A stretch of DNA of 63,354 nt, filler included, from Reticulomyxa filosa (taxonomy: Eukaryota; Protista; Foraminifera), in NCBI GenBank assembly GCA_000512085.1. It is 13 parts of 13 records of this genome, joined end to end, with 100 filler letters (N's around TTAATTAATTAA, not from the genome) between each part and the next. Parts side by side here need not be neighbours in the genome. Positions count along the whole stretch, not along the records: positions 20,739 to 42,299 come from ASPP01012842.1; 12 more parts are not named here. One strand, given 5' to 3'. The first letter of the stretch is position 1. Each line of letters begins with the position of its first letter. Shown here piece after piece: positions 29,674-40,899 of this stretch. The position numbers and the translations under genes were made by a program. Under the pieces are notes generated by a model. That model worked only from the letters and a program-made list of their open reading frames with translations, was not told where the DNA came from and ran no database searches.

Positions 29674-32600
29674 TCATTGAGCCGAAGACTGACTCATAAC
29701 ACTTTTCCTGGCAACACCAATATGGCAATCATTGACTTTTGCAGCAAAGCGCAAGGAGCACAACGACTCTGTATTGTTCGTCATTCATTTCCAAACCAAA
29801 ACATTACAACTATGTTTTCTTTGACAAAAGCCAAAAAAAAAAAGAAATTACCATCGATTTTATCACTTTCTGGACACAAGTTCACAAACATCAAAGTCTT
29901 GCTCTGCCCTCCAAAATAATTCATTAACAAGTGCGTCAATTTACTATTTCGATAAGGGATATGTTTATGGTTATTTGACAATGCACTGATAACATCGCCT
30001 AAACAACTCAAAGAGCTATTGATATTTTGGGTTTCGATCAATTGTTGTCCCTTTTTTGTTGTTGTTTCAACAAACACATGCGCACATACACTACGTTATA
30101 AGATAAAAAAATAAAAAATAAACTTGAGCATGTGATTTTTTAATCTTTCGCTTCCGGCCAGATCAATCAAGTTCAAGACTCCAAACGTTTGTTGTTGGGT
30201 GATTGGGTTGATACCAGTTAAAAACAATTGGAATACTGAGTGTGATCGTGACGAGCGATCGTTGCAATCGGTCTTGCCCGTGGTACGATTTTTGCTGGCA
30301 CGCAATAGCAATGGATACACGTCTTGAGCACATTGCACAGTGCATTGAGTCAAGTCCGCCACTTCCACTTCATTTTTGTTTTTTCCGTCTTTTTTCAATG
30401 CCAACTCCAAATATGCATCGTCTTTTGGTGCCAACAGGTCACGAATCTATTTATTTATTTTTTTTTTTGCATTTCAACTTTTTTTTTTTTTTTGAAACTT
30501 GAAAGAAATTTGGAAAGATGTACCTTTTCATTGTAAATTTCCAAAAAGGAAGCCAGAAATTGGTACTTCCATCCTTTGGAAACTAGGTTCTCTGCATGGG
30601 CAAAGATTTGCTCCACTGCTCGTGGAATCATGCCTCTGTTTTCATCTTTGCTATTCAACGACGGACCCTCCATTGTATACGTCTTTCCGGAGCCAGTTTG
30701 CCCATACGCAAAGATGCAGACTTTCGCAAAGACACACAATATGCAATAAAATAAAAAAAAAAGATCAACAGCGATGAAAATAAACACGTCAAAAAGACGA
30801 ATGGCGTTACAAACCTTTGAATCCATCCAAAGCAGATTGCACCAACTGAGAAATTTCCGAGAACACATCGTCTTGTCTGTCGCAGGGTTGGAATACGCGA
30901 TCAAAATTGAAAGCGTAGCGTTTGCTTTCGCCCTTTTGGCCAGTGTAATTCACGCTCGATTCGCCTATCAAGACAATAGGCTGTTGCTCCGTTGTTTGTT
31001 CCGGGAACTCAAACACCAGATTGTTGTCTTTCTCTTCGCCATTCAATATTGGCCGAATTCGGCAATACACGCGGATATTACCTTTTAACTCTTGAATCGT
31101 GTTGTGCAAATGCTTTCGCAATTCTTCGTCCTTATCACAAATATATATGTATATATACATATATATATATACATATATGCATATATATATGTACATATGC
31201 AAATGCTAACTCTTCTGGCTCGATTTTCGAGTGCTACAATGGTTTGTTCTAGTCTGACAATACGTTCCTCTCGAGCGACGAGCTGTTTCATTTGTTCGGT
31301 ACAGGTCATGTCGAGCTGTTCATATTGCATTTTCAAGGACATCATTTCGCCGCGCTTTTGCATCGCCTGCGTGTCGTTCAAGGAAATTACGTTTTGCAGG
31401 GTTCTGCGAGTGCCTTCAAACTCTGTCAGTTGCTTCATTTGGTTTTCAATGGTATTGTTCAACGATTGGTTTTCGAGTTGCAATGAGCCATTGATTTGTC
31501 TTTTTTTTTTTTTTTTTGTGTGTGTGTACATATACATACATGTGTAATTTGTCTTTTTTTTTTTTTTCCTTGCATCCTGTGTCAGCAATGTATTTCGAAA
31601 CTTGGCTTGTTGAAGCTCTTGTTTGCAAATGGTCAACGACTTTTCCATTTGCCCCAGAGAGTCGTGTTGATGGGTCATTTGTTTGGACTGAATGTTATAC
31701 TGTTCGCGAATAAGCACCAACTGTGAGTCCAGCATTTTCAGCTCCGACGCTTGCGATTGAATGGTCGAGTCTTTCAAGCAAAGGTTCATTTGCAACGTGG
31801 TCACTTGTTGTTGCAAGGTTTGCTTCGATTGGTCCAACGCACAGTATTGATTCTTCAAGCTGTCCATCTGCTTTTCCAGTCGCTCTTTTTCCATCTTGGC
31901 ATTTTCGACAGATCTTTCCATTGTTTCCAACTTTTGTTGAAACTCACGCAATTGCAACTGCCCATTCTTCACTTCTTGCAAATGTTCGTCTTCGCGCGCG
32001 TTTTTTTCATGTTCCAACTCAATATTGTGTTCTATTATATTAAATATATATACATATATGTATATGTATACATATATATATATATATATGTATGCATTAA
32101 TCCAACCTTGCAATTGTTCAACGAGAGCTTGTTTGTCTTTCAATTCAGCTTGTAATTGGACGAGTTGTTCTTTGAGTTGAGGCAACGTCAAGGGCTTGTT
32201 GGCACCGCCCAGGTTACCTCTTCTTGATGATGTGCTCGAGCCTCGACTGTTGCTTCGATCTCTGCTGGCATTGCTGTTTCTTGCTAATGCGTTTGTTGGA
32301 TTCATGCTGCTTTTGTGGATTAGACTTCGGCCTCGCATCAGCGCATTGCGTCTGTTATTCTCATTGTCACTGTCTTCCGTGTCCTGTCCATTGCCACTAC
32401 GCAGTGAAGACGAATACATTTTGTTGTTGTTGTTGCTACTGCTGCCGCTTACGTAGGTTGAGCCACGTAGGCCATGACTATTTATCCCAATGTCTTTGCT
32501 CCGACACTCGAACTGTTCTGACTCTTCGAGTTCATTCCATCAAATCCTTTTTTTTTTTTTTTTTTAAGTGTACTTTGTAAATTCCCTTCTTTCCTCCTCT

Positions 32601-36269: not shown

Positions 36270-39200
36270 ATGGCAGACACAGAAAATGTGGCAGAAATGG
36301 CAGTGCTCACTGATAAAGAGGAGGAGATAGTCCCTGATACAAGATACTCGAGCAGCGATGTTATTGCGGCTGCAGAGGAAATCAAGTTCAAACAACAACA
36401 AGCAGCGGAAAAAGTGGAAAGAGAAATAAAGACAGGGAAAAAAACACCAGAGGAAGCACAAGCAGAATTGCGCAAAGCTTACACAACAATGGCCCATGTC
36501 CTGGACAAGTTGGAGCTTGCGAAGGAGTTCGATACTAACCTTGAAACGGGGCTGACATCAAAACAAGTTTGAACGAACAAGCAAAAAAAAAATTGCGATT
36601 TTTCTTTTTTTCCCTGCCTAAAAAAGGTCCTGAAAAGCATTTTACAAATGTTTTGCATAATAAAACGCGTGTGTTTGTGGTTATGTTATAGGTGGAAGAA
36701 AAACTACAAAAATTTGGCTTCAATGAATTGTCGCCTGCATATCGCGAGCCGTGGTACGTTAAAATGATACGATTTATTTTCGGTGGTTTTTTCAATCAGT
36801 TGCTGTTGACCGGAGCAGTCTTGTGTTTCGTTGCGTATGGTTTGCAACCAACCATCCCAAGCAATGTTAAGTGTTGCTATTTTGAAAACATTTTTGTGAA
36901 ACGTGCTATAACGCGGTCATGAGTATTCGCCGCAACAACTAATGACACACAAAATAATGTTGCTATGACAGATGTATTTAGGCGTGTGCCTGATAGTCGT
37001 GGTGTTGGTAACGGGTTTGTTTGGATTTTATCAAGAGAGTAAATCCGATGACCTAATGGCTGGGTTGTCAAAAATGTTACCACCCAATGTAATCGTATTG
37101 CGCAACGGTGAAAAAACGAGTATTTCTCCTACGTTATTGGTGCCAGGGGACATTGTCGACATGTCCATGGGAATGCGTATTCCGGCGGACATTCGTATTT
37201 TTGATTGCACACCGGACATGGAAGTTTTGTTAATAAGAAGTTTTTTTTTAAAAGAAAAAAAAGGGTATACGAATGAAACATAGAACCAAAAAAAAATTAA
37301 AAATTTTGAAGCTTTTACTCCTTTCTTAGTTCCCTCTTGCAGCTTCTCCAATAAATAAGTTAAAAGTTATGAACGTGAAAACAGGTCGACAACTCATCTT
37401 TGACAGGCGAGTCAGAACCCCAGAAACGAGATTGGCGAAAATCAAACCTCGTTCCAGCAGAATCACCTAACTTGACATTTTTCGGTACTTTGTTGGTCCG
37501 TGGCAAAGGCACGGGAGTAGTAATTGGTACTGGAGATACCACATTTATGGGTCACACGGCCAAAGCAGCTGCGTCCACAGAATCAGAACCTACCCCGATT
37601 GCCTTGGAAATCAAAGACTTTTGTTTCAAAATTTCGATAATCGCTTTCGCACTGGGAATATTGTTTTTCGTTTTGGGGATGGCCACCAATCCAAATTGGA
37701 TTGTTAATGTGGTCTGGTTGATTGGGATCATTGTCGCAAACGTTCCTGAGGGTCTGCTTGCTGAAGTCACCGTATCTCTCACTCTTACCGCAAATCGAAT
37801 GTTTCATAAAGTTTAGTTTATGTTGCTCTCTTTGCTTTATTTTAGTTCGCACATGTACACCTGTGTACGTATGTTGTATATGACGTGTATAAATCATTCC
37901 GGATTTTGGCTTTGTATAGAATGTGCGTGTGAAAAACTTGGAATCAGTGGAAACGTTGGGTTCCACCACAGTGATATGCTCAGATAAGACAGGAACACTG
38001 ACGACAAACGTAATGACGTGTATGTATGTTGTATTTGATTTGAAAGAACGCGAATGTGACACAACATCACCAATGCAAGCCATTGAAGGAGATTTTTACG
38101 ACGTACGCGATAAAATGGTAAAGCAAAGAAAGCCTGATTTCTTGCGATTGGTCCGCTGTGCCGCGCTATGTAACAACGCCGAATTCATTGGCGAAGAGAT
38201 TGACGAAACTGCAAATGCGACAGAAACAGCAATGGTTAAATTCGCTTTTGGACATGTCAATTCAGCCTATTCCACCACCGTAGCCAATTATCGAAAATAC
38301 CACAAAAAATTGCATGAGATCCCATTCAACAGCTCTAATAAGTGGCAAATATCAGTGCATGAACTAATGTCAAATTACACAATCGACGAAGAAGGAAAGA
38401 TTGGCAAAAGTGAAGGAAACGAAGAAGAGAAAAGTAAAGTCGATGACTCGAACAAAAAGTTGGCATTGATCCAAATGAAAGGAGCCCCGGAACGTGTGTT
38501 GACATTTTGTGATAGACATTGGATGGACGGCAAATCAGTGGAATTGACAGAAAAAAACCGCGAAGAAGTAATGGATTTAGTGATGACATTAGGAAGTCGT
38601 GGACAGCGTGTTTTGGCATTGGCTGAAGTGATTCTCGATCCCCAAGAATACGACTTGAATATAGAAGAGCCTATTCCAGAGTATTTCTCCGAAGAAGTTG
38701 AGGCAGTTGATGAGGACAATTGTGTGGTCGTAGAACTTAACGATGAAAAACACAAAGTCCCTGTCAGCGGAAAAAATGAAGCAGGCAAAGAGTATCCATG
38801 GGAGGAATTGCAAATCAAACACATTAAAGATGGAATCAATCAAACATTAAATATTCCTGTTGCATCGCAGCGAATTTTGTTTGGAAATCGAGGTCAAATT
38901 CTCGATGATGAATTGTTATTCAGTGACCTGAAATGTGAACGTGGCAGCGTGTTCCATTTGCGATTGGGTCCATACAAATTTGCCGGAACCAAAGAAGAAA
39001 ATGTGAACTGGCCATTCCGTCGAAATGGAGAACAAGGATTGGTATTCATTGGTTTGATGGCCATGATTGACCCTCCAAGACCCGGTGTACCCGAGGCTGT
39101 GACCAAGTGTCAGTCGGCAGGTATCAAAGTGATCATGGTCACTGGTGATCACCCCGTCACGGCCAAGGCCATTGCGTCCAAGGTAGGAATTTTGGGCCCA

Positions 39201-40899
39201 AAATCCCAAACTTTGGAAGACGTGGCAAAAGAAAATACGGAGGAAACAAGGCACTGGTCAAAGACGAAGAATATGACGCTGTCGTCGTGCCTGGCTGGGA
39301 ACTGCAAGAAGAATTAGACAAAGACCCGAGATCCGTTGCCGAGTTTTGGAACCGAACTCTGATTAAAAATAATGTCGTATTTGCCCGAACGTCTCCTCAA
39401 CAAAAATTATTGATTGTCTCTGCATGTCAAGATCGAGGAGGAATTGTCGCAGTCACTGGAGATGGTGTAAATGATTCCCCGGCCTTGAAGAAAGCAGATA
39501 TTGGTATTGCCATGGGTAAAACAGGTACTGAAGTGGCAAAAGAAGCTGCAGATATGATATTGCTAGATGATAATTTTGCATCAATTGTCAACGGAGTGGA
39601 AGAAGGACGTTTAATTTTTGACAACTTGAAAAAAGCAATTGCGTACATTTTATCTTCAAACATTCCCGAATTGATTCCATTTTTATTGACCCAAATGATT
39701 GGATTGCCATTACCATTGACTACGGTGATGATTCTTATGATCGACTTGGGAACAGATATTGCCCCGTCCATTGCTATGGCATATGAAGAGAAAGAGTCTG
39801 ATATCATGCATAGACCACCAAGAAACGCCAAAAAGATAAGCTGGTGCAGTGGAGATTACTTGGTTTTGCGTACGGACAAATTGGTATTTTGGAATCCTTT
39901 GGCGGAATGTACACTTACTTCGTGGTGTTGGCAGCGTTTGGGTTACGTCCCGAATTTTTATTGCTGTTAGATCGTGACCTGGTGTTTGAGGACATTGTTA
40001 CTCACGATTTGCGAAAATATTCCTATTGGTTGCATTGCTTTGAACCAGATTTTGCCAAAGATTTGGACCACTACTGTTACTTTATGCCCGATTTTGGCAA
40101 TACTCAGATTGGAAATGTACCTTCTGACAAACTTTCTTTTAACAGTTCACACGACTTTTCGGATTGGTTGGGCAATACACGCTCATTTATCAAAAGCAGC
40201 AGAAAGTTTTTGAAAAGTTCCAAGACTTCAAACTTCCAAAATGCAGCAGCATTGACAAATGCAATGAATCAAAAAAACTGGACTGCTTTTCAACATGCGT
40301 GGAACAATGGGTTCTATGATGATATGTCAAAACACTTGTTCCGCACTAATTTGTATCCCACCCGTCCGTGTCATAAAACAGATTTTTTTGGAGAGAAATT
40401 TGCGTATTGTGACCATAGTATGACCAAAAGCAGAACTTACCCAGGTAGAAATTCTTTATTTCCAATGCAAGCTAAAGATCGCAACGAGGCATTGCTGCAA
40501 GCACAAACCGCATTCTTCATTTCTGTCGTTACACAACAATGGGCAAATATTCTCGTTTGCAAGACCAGAACTCGTTCTTTATTTGAACAAGGCTTGGGGT
40601 AAGTGTTACACAGTTTCAATTTTTCATTTATTTTTGCATTTGATGTCTTTTTTAATGTTCAAAACACACAAAATAGAAATGGATTTATGAACTATGCGCT
40701 TCTTTGTGAAACGCTTTTGGCGGGAGTGCTGACTTACATTCCGGCGAGCAACATTGTGTTGGCCACTCGTCCTGTTCGATTTGTTTGGTGGTTAGCTGGT
40801 TTGCCATTTGCAATGTCTATAATTGCTTATGATGAAATTAGAAAGGGCATCATGCGCAAACATCCTAATGGTTGGCTTGTTATGGCAAATGCCTGGTAA
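36270..40899 (+). CDS. P-type ATPase IIC (Na+/K+-ATPase alpha-like)
   Basis: Motifs [76 protein letters not shown]. Introns 36567-36691, 36866-36971, 37224-37384, 37811-37919, 40599-40676. Homopolymer frameshifts near 39230 and 39830. Confidence 0.95.

Follow-up and report, generated by a model that had tools for sequence, protein, structure and literature searches.

A ubiquitin-like domain inserted in the nucleotide-binding domain of a type IIC P-type ATPase of Reticulomyxa filosa and its relatives

Introduction

How an ion pump comes to carry a ubiquitin fold in its ATP-binding domain is the question raised by one gene of the foraminiferan Reticulomyxa filosa. Few membrane enzymes have been studied as thoroughly as the P-type ATPases, in which the nucleotide-binding (N) domain is as a rule compact and serves to bind ATP. 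The gene lies in a 63,354-nucleotide stretch of the R. filosa genome assembly GCA_000512085.1 (hereafter, the window), within the part that comes from record ASPP01012842.1, and its product has the motifs of a type IIC (Na+/K+-like) pump. A sequence-only reading of the window had proposed that a single exon of this gene encodes about 100 extra in-frame residues, that these form a ubiquitin-like domain (UBL) in the N domain of a Na+/K+-ATPase, and that no P-type ATPase with such a domain is known. Here, we examine whether the insert folds as ubiquitin does, whether it belongs to the mature protein, which pumps carry it, and what it may do there. The proposal of a UBL within the N domain held: family models, profile comparison, structure prediction, and two structural comparisons agreed on the fold, and the host is a IIC pump. 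The claim of novelty held in part, as the domain proved to be a trait of a family of pumps and not of this gene alone.

Results

Fold of the insert

Homology profiles and a predicted structure together confirmed that the insert holds a complete, folded ubiquitin-like (β-grasp) domain (Table 1). Searched in isolation, the insert matched Pfam family PF00240 at 26.8 to 26.9 bits (curated cutoff, 25.4; E, 4e-6) over positions 19 to 69 of the 72 in the profile. The score was 24.1 bits when the whole exon was searched, and 10 of 19 homologous inserts matched the family individually at an E value of 0.01 or less. Comparison of the single insert to the Protein Data Bank (PDB) was weak, with an E value of 0.01 for NEDD8 and 0.2 to 0.6 for single ubiquitin, and the low E values for polyubiquitin in that search were the product of summed repeats. 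A profile of the 19 homologous inserts, by comparison, matched ISG15 at 3e-7, the Dsk2 UBL at 1.5e-6, NEDD8 at 1e-4, and single ubiquitin at 5e-4, and the Dsk2 match spanned the whole domain (profile positions 38 to 110 against Dsk2 residues 4 to 74). The resemblance to ubiquitin that had been read by eye is borne out by these scores.

The predicted structure gave the same answer. AlphaFold2 (AF2), run on the alignment of 19 sequences, returned a model with a mean predicted local distance difference test score (pLDDT) of 83.8 and a predicted template modeling score of 0.76. Its topology is β-β-α-β-β-3(10)-β, with strands at residues 27 to 32, 35 to 40, 76 to 79, and 102 to 108, the helix at 58 to 69, and the 3(10) helix at 93 to 96. 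The best 50 PDB matches of the model in Foldseek all belonged to the ubiquitin family (ubiquitin, NEDD8, UBL4A, Dsk2, SUMO, and BAG1), with a template modeling score of about 0.8 by target and a root mean square deviation (rmsd) of about 2 Å. Alignment of the model to ubiquitin with VIA-align gave a Z score of 10.8 and an rmsd of 1.4 to 1.8 Å over 72 to 74 of 75 residues, at about 26% identity. A fold search of the ESM Atlas returned only generic ubiquitin-family clusters, and a search of the same atlas by features gave no usable match. Relative to ubiquitin, the domain has an extension of about 10 residues between β2 and the helix and a two-residue insert after Phe45. The possibility that the segment lacks a β-grasp fold was thus not borne out by AF2, Foldseek, or VIA-align.

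Site of insertion

The insert (38649-38969) is a run of 107 stop-free codons within one large exon, which extends from 37920 to about 39230 in an open reading frame (ORF) of 37923-39317. The residues quoted in the sequence-only reading occur at the place given there. Its length is apparent from the span between the KGAPE and DPPR motifs, which is 196 residues in the R. filosa pump and 80 to 119 in 77 of the 93 related pumps that have both motifs; in 10 of the 93, the span is at least 183. Alignment to solved pumps splits in two at the same place, where 127 residues of the window stand against 15 of 8k1l. About 107 of the 127 are new, comprising a linker and the domain proper, and the remainder includes the ordinary loop. 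The estimate of about 100 extra residues was therefore close.

Where the insert enters is defined by pumps that lack it. Compared to two insert-free relatives, P0014 and the Bonamia ostreae pump P0017, the insertion point falls between LELDG..FP and Y-x-F-x-G....N-F-P-F, and the counterparts of the segment that follows the UBL are YEFSGDGRDGANFPF in P0014 and YKFQGDSPDEANFPF in P0017. The insert starts 14 residues past the Arg of GQRVLA, which we take to occupy the position of ATP-binding Arg544 of animal Na,K-ATPase, and the strand that runs to the MIDPPR hinge comes after it. The insertion site is a distal surface hairpin loop of the N domain. The start of the linker, Y-D/N-I/L-N-I/V-x-E-P, is kept among insert-bearing pumps.

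Several observations bear on whether the insert is retained in the message. Homologs derived from transcriptomes or metatranscriptomes carry it in frame, namely, those of Astrolonche (EukProt), Nonionella, Sorites (MMETSP0191), and Bolivina and those of the MERC/Tara set. The MERC catalog was, as we understand it, assembled from Tara Oceans eukaryotic metatranscriptomes; because several carriers come from it or from transcriptomes, the mature mRNAs of relatives keep the insert. Moreover, a Tara metagenome scaffold (L001) encodes parts of the actuator (A) domain, the N domain, the UBL, and the phosphorylation (P) domain within a single uninterrupted 2-kb ORF. The pump gene on that scaffold consists of only three long ORFs, with the UBL in the middle one, and is intron-poor there. 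We note that this marine relative (L001:2191-6572, TARA_SAMEA6001874_METAG-scaffold_10076) is 59% identical to the R. filosa pump over the large exon.

An intron was considered as an explanation for the insert, as in-frame GT...AG pairs span it. The contexts of these donors and acceptors are poor compared to the real introns of the gene, the GC content of the insert (0.40) is like that of the flanking exon (0.415) and not that of the introns (0.23 to 0.36), and the frame is open. We reject the intron on these grounds, and removal of the segment by splicing, which would have undone the sequence-only reading, is further contradicted by the homologs from transcriptomes.

Character of the domain

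What kind of UBL the pump carries was assessed from its tail, its surface, and an alignment of 31 sequences. The domain ends in HLRLG and runs straight on into PYKF of the pump, such that the LRGG tail is absent; the lack of a terminal Gly-Gly had been correctly read from the sequence. The single terminal Gly is conserved in at least 90% of the family, and the Pro that follows is near-invariant. Because there is no C-terminal Gly-Gly and the domain continues through Gly-Pro into the pump, it cannot be a conjugatable modifier. The UBL is a type 2 integral domain.

The surface by which ubiquitin receptors would recognize the domain varies. The residue equivalent to Lys48 of ubiquitin is Lys in none of the 31 sequences. 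At the position equivalent to Ile44, 20 of them have one of G, A, S, C, N, T, and R; across all 31, the residues there are G in 7, M in 5, A in 5, F in 4, S, C, and N in 2 each, and others. The Val70 equivalent is variable, and the β1-β2 loop, which corresponds to the region of Leu8, is polar. The His68 equivalent is H or Y in 21 of the 31, and in the copy in the window, the Ile44 and His68 positions are occupied by Leu and His, respectively. Thus, the Leu8-Ile44-His68-Val70 patch of UBLs that bind the proteasome or ubiquitin-associated (UBA) domains, of the Rad23, Dsk2, and parkin type, is not conserved in the family. As neither the Ile44 patch nor Lys48 is conserved, a canonical ubiquitin-receptor signal is unlikely.

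The positions that are kept lie mostly in the core and the turns and include Gln41, Leu43, Phe/Tyr45, and the ELGI and GS motifs, and the Arg42 equivalent is R in 28 of the 31 sequences. Both junctions are also kept: the domain is preceded by Y-D/N-I-N-x-E-P and followed by G-P-Y-x-F-x-G-T. Mean pairwise identity among carriers is 24% in the UBL compared to 46% and 63% in the adjoining pump segments. The alignment indicates that the fold is maintained under relaxed sequence constraint.

Host pump

By its motifs and its closest solved relatives, the host protein is a type IIC pump. All 36 distinct PDB sequences found at an E value of 1e-20 or less were Na,K- or H,K-ATPase alpha subunits rather than members of SERCA, PMCA, or other subfamilies, the best of them at about 1e-23 over 236 residues around the insert. 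Na+/K+ ATPase alpha is also the annotation of the named relatives. Pfam detected E1-E2_ATPase (PF00122), Cation_ATPase (PF13246; N domain), Hydrolase (PF00702; P domain), and Cation_ATPase_C (PF00689) in the ORFs of the gene, and the translated exons contain intact DKTGT, TGES (A domain), KGAPE and FNSSNKW (N domain), MIDPPR (hinge), and TGDHP (P domain) motifs. Catalytic motifs, domain order, and Pfam domains are common to the R. filosa pump and the solved Na+,K+- and H+,K+-ATPase alpha subunits (8k1l, 2zxe, 3b8e, and 5ylu), whereas the latter have about 15 residues at the insertion site and no UBL. Searches used single-exon queries or proteins retrieved from databases. The five introns are short, AT-rich, and bounded by GT-AG.

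The pump differs from animal pumps at two further places. In the cation-site region, where PEGLL, SSNIPE, and DLGTD are present, the residue that corresponds to Asp926 of animal Na,K-ATPase is an Asn (40546-40548; WANIL, 40540-40554, compared to WADLV). Asp926 is part of the third Na+ site in the animal enzyme, and the ion specificity of the R. filosa pump may differ. In addition, the loop between transmembrane segments 7 and 8 (TM7-TM8; about 39960-40470 in the window) exceeds that of animal pumps by about 150 residues and contains several Cys residues, with 230 residues between AYGQIG and CKTR compared to 80 to 99. The TM7-TM8 loop is the site of beta-subunit binding in animal pumps, and reading of the translated exon showed no SYGQ beta-binding motif in the enlarged loop. 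Long TM7-TM8 loops also occur in other protist IIC pumps that lack a UBL, and thus the two traits are not linked. Finally, a second, smaller insert of about 25 residues, rich in Lys and Glu, follows SVHEL in the N domain (about 38370-38460), and its length varies among UBL-bearing relatives.

Distribution and origin

How widely the insert occurs was determined by an exhaustive search with a 296-residue query centered on it against 1.84 billion representatives, together with two word-index searches. The exhaustive search found 12,127 pumps, and in about 22 of the best 30 clusters, the alignment ran through the insert in one stretch. A word-index search with the insert alone found no match, though that tool is limited by a length window and exact 5-mers, and the relatives were found by the exhaustive search. 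Carriers were called with a hidden Markov model of the UBL columns only, applied to 396 fetched proteins, and 96 of these had a UBL at the same place. R. filosa has three such paralogs: P0319, which is the present gene, ETO21357.1 (P0001), and P0315. The other named foraminiferan carriers are Nonionella stella, Sorites sp. (MMETSP0191), and Bolivina argentea, one carrier, Astrolonche serrata, belongs to the Acantharea (Retaria), and further carriers are found among Tara Oceans metatranscriptome proteins. A search of foraminiferal and rhizarian transcriptomes for the same insertion had been suggested with the sequence-only reading, and all four of these genera have it.

Each of the 36 distinct IIC sequences with a solved structure lacks the insert, as do the other pumps examined outside the set of carriers, and no lost domain or decayed remnant was seen among the 96 carriers. 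The nearest insert-free pumps include those of Bonamia ostreae (Endomyxa; P0017) and Cercozoa sp. M6MM, which are the only two named rhizarians outside Retaria in the sample. Far from being common in IIC ATPases, the insert is confined to one clade whose named members are only Foraminifera and Acantharea. Two other pumps with long loops were set aside: P0038 has an unrelated insert of about 40 residues nearby, and P0053 has a G-rich stretch that resembles a retained intron; neither loop holds a UBL.

A tree of 74 pumps, built with the insert columns removed, placed all 11 carriers inside one set of 13 rows. The other two rows, P0130 and P0142, are long-branch, insert-free sequences that might be read as having lost the UBL. 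We do not read these two as losses, as the tree in which carriers were held monophyletic had a log-likelihood 18.5 above that of the free quick tree (P value of the approximately unbiased test, 0.79), and we take their nesting to be a search or long-branch effect. The data are compatible with a single origin of the insert, for which the better tree was found. A ubiquitin- or NEDD8-like sequence would have been inserted once into a lineage of IIC pumps, the named members of which are all Retaria.

Gene model and neighboring gene

Two single-nucleotide frame slips, both in A-rich runs, interrupt the coding block 37920-40601 (Table 1). No stop interrupts the exons, and in tblastn, relatives are colinear across both slips, which are probably homopolymer errors of the assembly. 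Over 37920-39053, the window matches with 100% identity the public model P0319 (Na+/K+ transporting ATPase subunit alpha), in which the UBL occupies residues 664 to 747. To bridge the slips, the same model skips 39054-39181 as an artificial intron, such that the MIDPPR hinge is lost, and takes part of intron 1 (36569-36652) as coding. It also reads two stretches in the wrong frame, with sites of misfit at 39054-39181 and 39941-39966, and TGDHP is lost. Comparison with the window suggests that P0319 is probably wrong at these stretches.

Elsewhere in the window, a kinesin-like gene lies on the minus strand (29781-32419). Because its motor motifs, including LIDLAGSE, come after a long coiled-coil region, the arrangement suggests a C-terminal motor. 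The introns of this gene are full of (TATA/TACA)n microsatellites, which translate as YIYIYI.

Table 1. Coordinates of the pump gene, its insert, and associated features in the window
Feature	Position	Strand	Evidence
Type IIC (Na+/K+-like) P-type ATPase gene, R. filosa	36270..40899	+	GT-AG junctions, Pfam, colinear tblastn of relatives
Coding blocks of the pump gene	36270-36567, 36692-36865, 36973-37223, 37379-37811, 37920-40601 (two 1-nt frame slips inside), 40678-40899		
DKTGT phosphorylation motif	37983..37997	+	In frame with ORF 37923-39317
Arg of GQRVLA, last N-domain strand ahead of the insertion	38607..38609	+	Aligned to GERVLGF of 8k1l
Acidic N-terminal linker of the insert, about 23 residues	38649..38717	+	19-sequence alignment; AF2 pLDDT 65-85
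Ubiquitin-like β-grasp domain, 84 residues	38718..38969	+	Pfam PF00240, profile vs PDB, AF2, Foldseek, VIA-align, 31-sequence alignment
UBL elements	β1 38721-38738, β2 38745-38762, α1 38814-38849, β3 38868-38879, 3(10) helix 38919-38930, β5 38946-38966	+	
Return segment after the UBL	38970..39017	+	Matches short loop of canonical pumps (Y-x-F-x-G...N-F/W-P)
MIDPPR hinge joining the N and P domains	39063..39080	+	Aligned to solved pumps
First 1-nt frame slip, A-rich run, frame 1 to frame 3	39224..39236	+	Relatives align unbroken across it
Second 1-nt frame slip, at gccaaaaag, frame 3 to frame 2	39820..39844	+	Relatives align unbroken across it

Discussion

How a ubiquitin fold might serve an ion pump is best approached by what the family keeps and what it lets vary. 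Taken as a whole, the explanation to which we give slightly better than even chances is that Retaria possess a IIC pump with an integral UBL that acts as a regulatory or docking module. Its functional part, under which the UBL stays on the N domain permanently to regulate the pump or dock a partner, we put at a little short of even. This reading is favored because the fold, the length, and the junctions are kept across Foraminifera, Acantharea, and paralogs, while the canonical receptor surface is not. The UBL might recruit a partner peculiar to the lineage, which would bind it somewhere other than at the canonical Ile44 patch. Alternatively, it might alter closure of the N domain on the A and P domains, which sets the kinetics of the pump; an effect on N-domain movement had been named as one option in the sequence-only reading. 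In neither case would it be a signal that mimics ubiquitin in degradation or sorting. Some observations weigh against a regulatory or docking role. The surface of the UBL is poorly conserved, which also fits a mere spacer; named taxa are available for few of the carriers, most of which come from marine metagenomes and metatranscriptomes; and the two frame slips might mean that the copy in the window is a young pseudogene. Despite the slips, the same domain is present in the two other R. filosa paralogs and in many relatives.

Perhaps the domain is instead a built-in mimic of ubiquitin, read by Rpn10/13, p97 adaptors, UBA domains or ubiquitin-interacting motifs (UIM), or ESCRT/epsin-type factors, and ties the abundance or location of the pump to the ubiquitin system, much as the sequence-only reading had suggested in a coupling to proteasome, p97, or UBA partners. 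The nearest known matches of the domain are ubiquitin, NEDD8, ISG15, and the Dsk2 UBL, in-frame ubiquitin fusions can drive the sorting of membrane proteins, and the Leu and His in the window copy, like the His or Tyr at the His68 position in two-thirds of the family (21 of 31), would suit such a role. We consider a mimic unlikely nonetheless, as most members have a small or polar residue at the Ile44 position, a variable residue at that of Val70, and a polar β1-β2 loop, and as a housekeeping pump that was always tagged for degradation would come at a cost. A ubiquitin-like coding piece might otherwise have landed once in a permissive loop and stayed as an inert, folded spacer. The loop is variable in other pumps, as the unrelated insert of P0038 attests, the surface of the UBL evolves faster than its flanks, and the same gene has gained further lineage-specific inserts. 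Such a passenger seems to us improbable in light of the fold, length, and junctions (Y-D-I-N-x-E-P and G-P-Y-x-F-x-G-T) that persist across Foraminifera, Acantharea, and multiple paralogs, of the 96 carriers without loss or remnant, and of the near-constant Arg42 equivalent (28 of 31).

That the insert is an artifact, be it an unspliced intron, a chimera of assembly, or an insertion specific to a pseudogene, could be argued from the frame slips and from the fragmented assembly. The 107-codon open frame and its exon-like GC content speak against an artifact, as does its recurrence: at least five named species have the insert in proteins derived from transcriptomes, and it is also present among Tara metatranscriptome proteins, within the one 2-kb ORF of an independent Tara metagenome scaffold, and in two further R. 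filosa paralogs. We regard an artifact as highly improbable and return to an integral module that regulates the pump or docks it to a partner.

Parts of this architecture have counterparts elsewhere. Integral type 2 UBLs, such as those of Dsk2/ubiquilin (2bwe), UBL4A (2dzi), BAG1 (1wxv), ISG15, and the tandem UBLs of OASL (7sbi), have the same β-grasp fold, show profile similarity to the pump UBL, and are likewise not conjugated. Such UBLs, however, are usually terminal, and many use the Ile44 patch to bind the proteasome or UBA domains, whereas the pump UBL is internal, in a loop of another domain, and varies at Ile44. Some UBLs regulate or stabilize the enzyme to which they belong; that of SMCHD1 is reported to be required for stability or dimerization of the adjacent GHKL ATPase module (PMC6620310, PMC8286825). 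SMCHD1 resembles the pump in that the UBL is covalently attached to a module that hydrolyzes nucleotide, and differs in fold (GHKL compared to HAD/P-type) and in having the UBL at the N terminus rather than inserted. A chimera of a P4-ATPase and a guanylate cyclase is found in alveolates and stramenopiles (PMC13466520). Like the R. filosa pump, it is a P-type ATPase of a stramenopile-alveolate-rhizarian (SAR) lineage that gained an extra folded domain and kept it within the lineage, but the chimera is an end-to-end fusion of a catalytic domain to a P4 pump, whereas the UBL is noncatalytic and internal to a IIC pump.

Why the domain escaped notice may lie in how relatives are annotated. Precomputed Pfam lists of the relatives give PF00240 only once, for P0008, and the UBL in public entries for Na+/K+ ATPase alpha thus seems to have gone unnoticed. 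A full-text search of the literature found no UBL or β-grasp domain described in any P-type ATPase within the library searched, and within that scope a IIC pump with an inserted UBL appears to be undescribed. The claim that no P-type ATPase was known to have an integral UBL therefore stands for the solved IIC sequences and the literature searched and falls only insofar as it implied a single gene, as the insert is a family trait of Retaria.

What the domain means for the pump and for the lineage can be put as a broader proposal, which we advance tentatively and at rather less than even chances. The pump would be the first of the P-type with an integral ubiquitin fold, acquired when the domain was inserted once, long ago, in the ancestor that Foraminifera and Radiolaria share, and the domain would be a synapomorphy of Retaria that provides a new regulatory or docking surface near the ATP site. 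A partner, if there is one, might, for example, take part in trafficking or in the cytoskeleton of reticulopodia and axopodia. As the insert unites Foraminifera and Acantharea and is absent from Bonamia ostreae and Cercozoa sp. M6MM, this rare genomic change is a candidate marker for Retaria. Moreover, a conserved ubiquitin fold beside the ATP-binding Arg suggests an unexplored way to regulate or anchor a primary ion pump.

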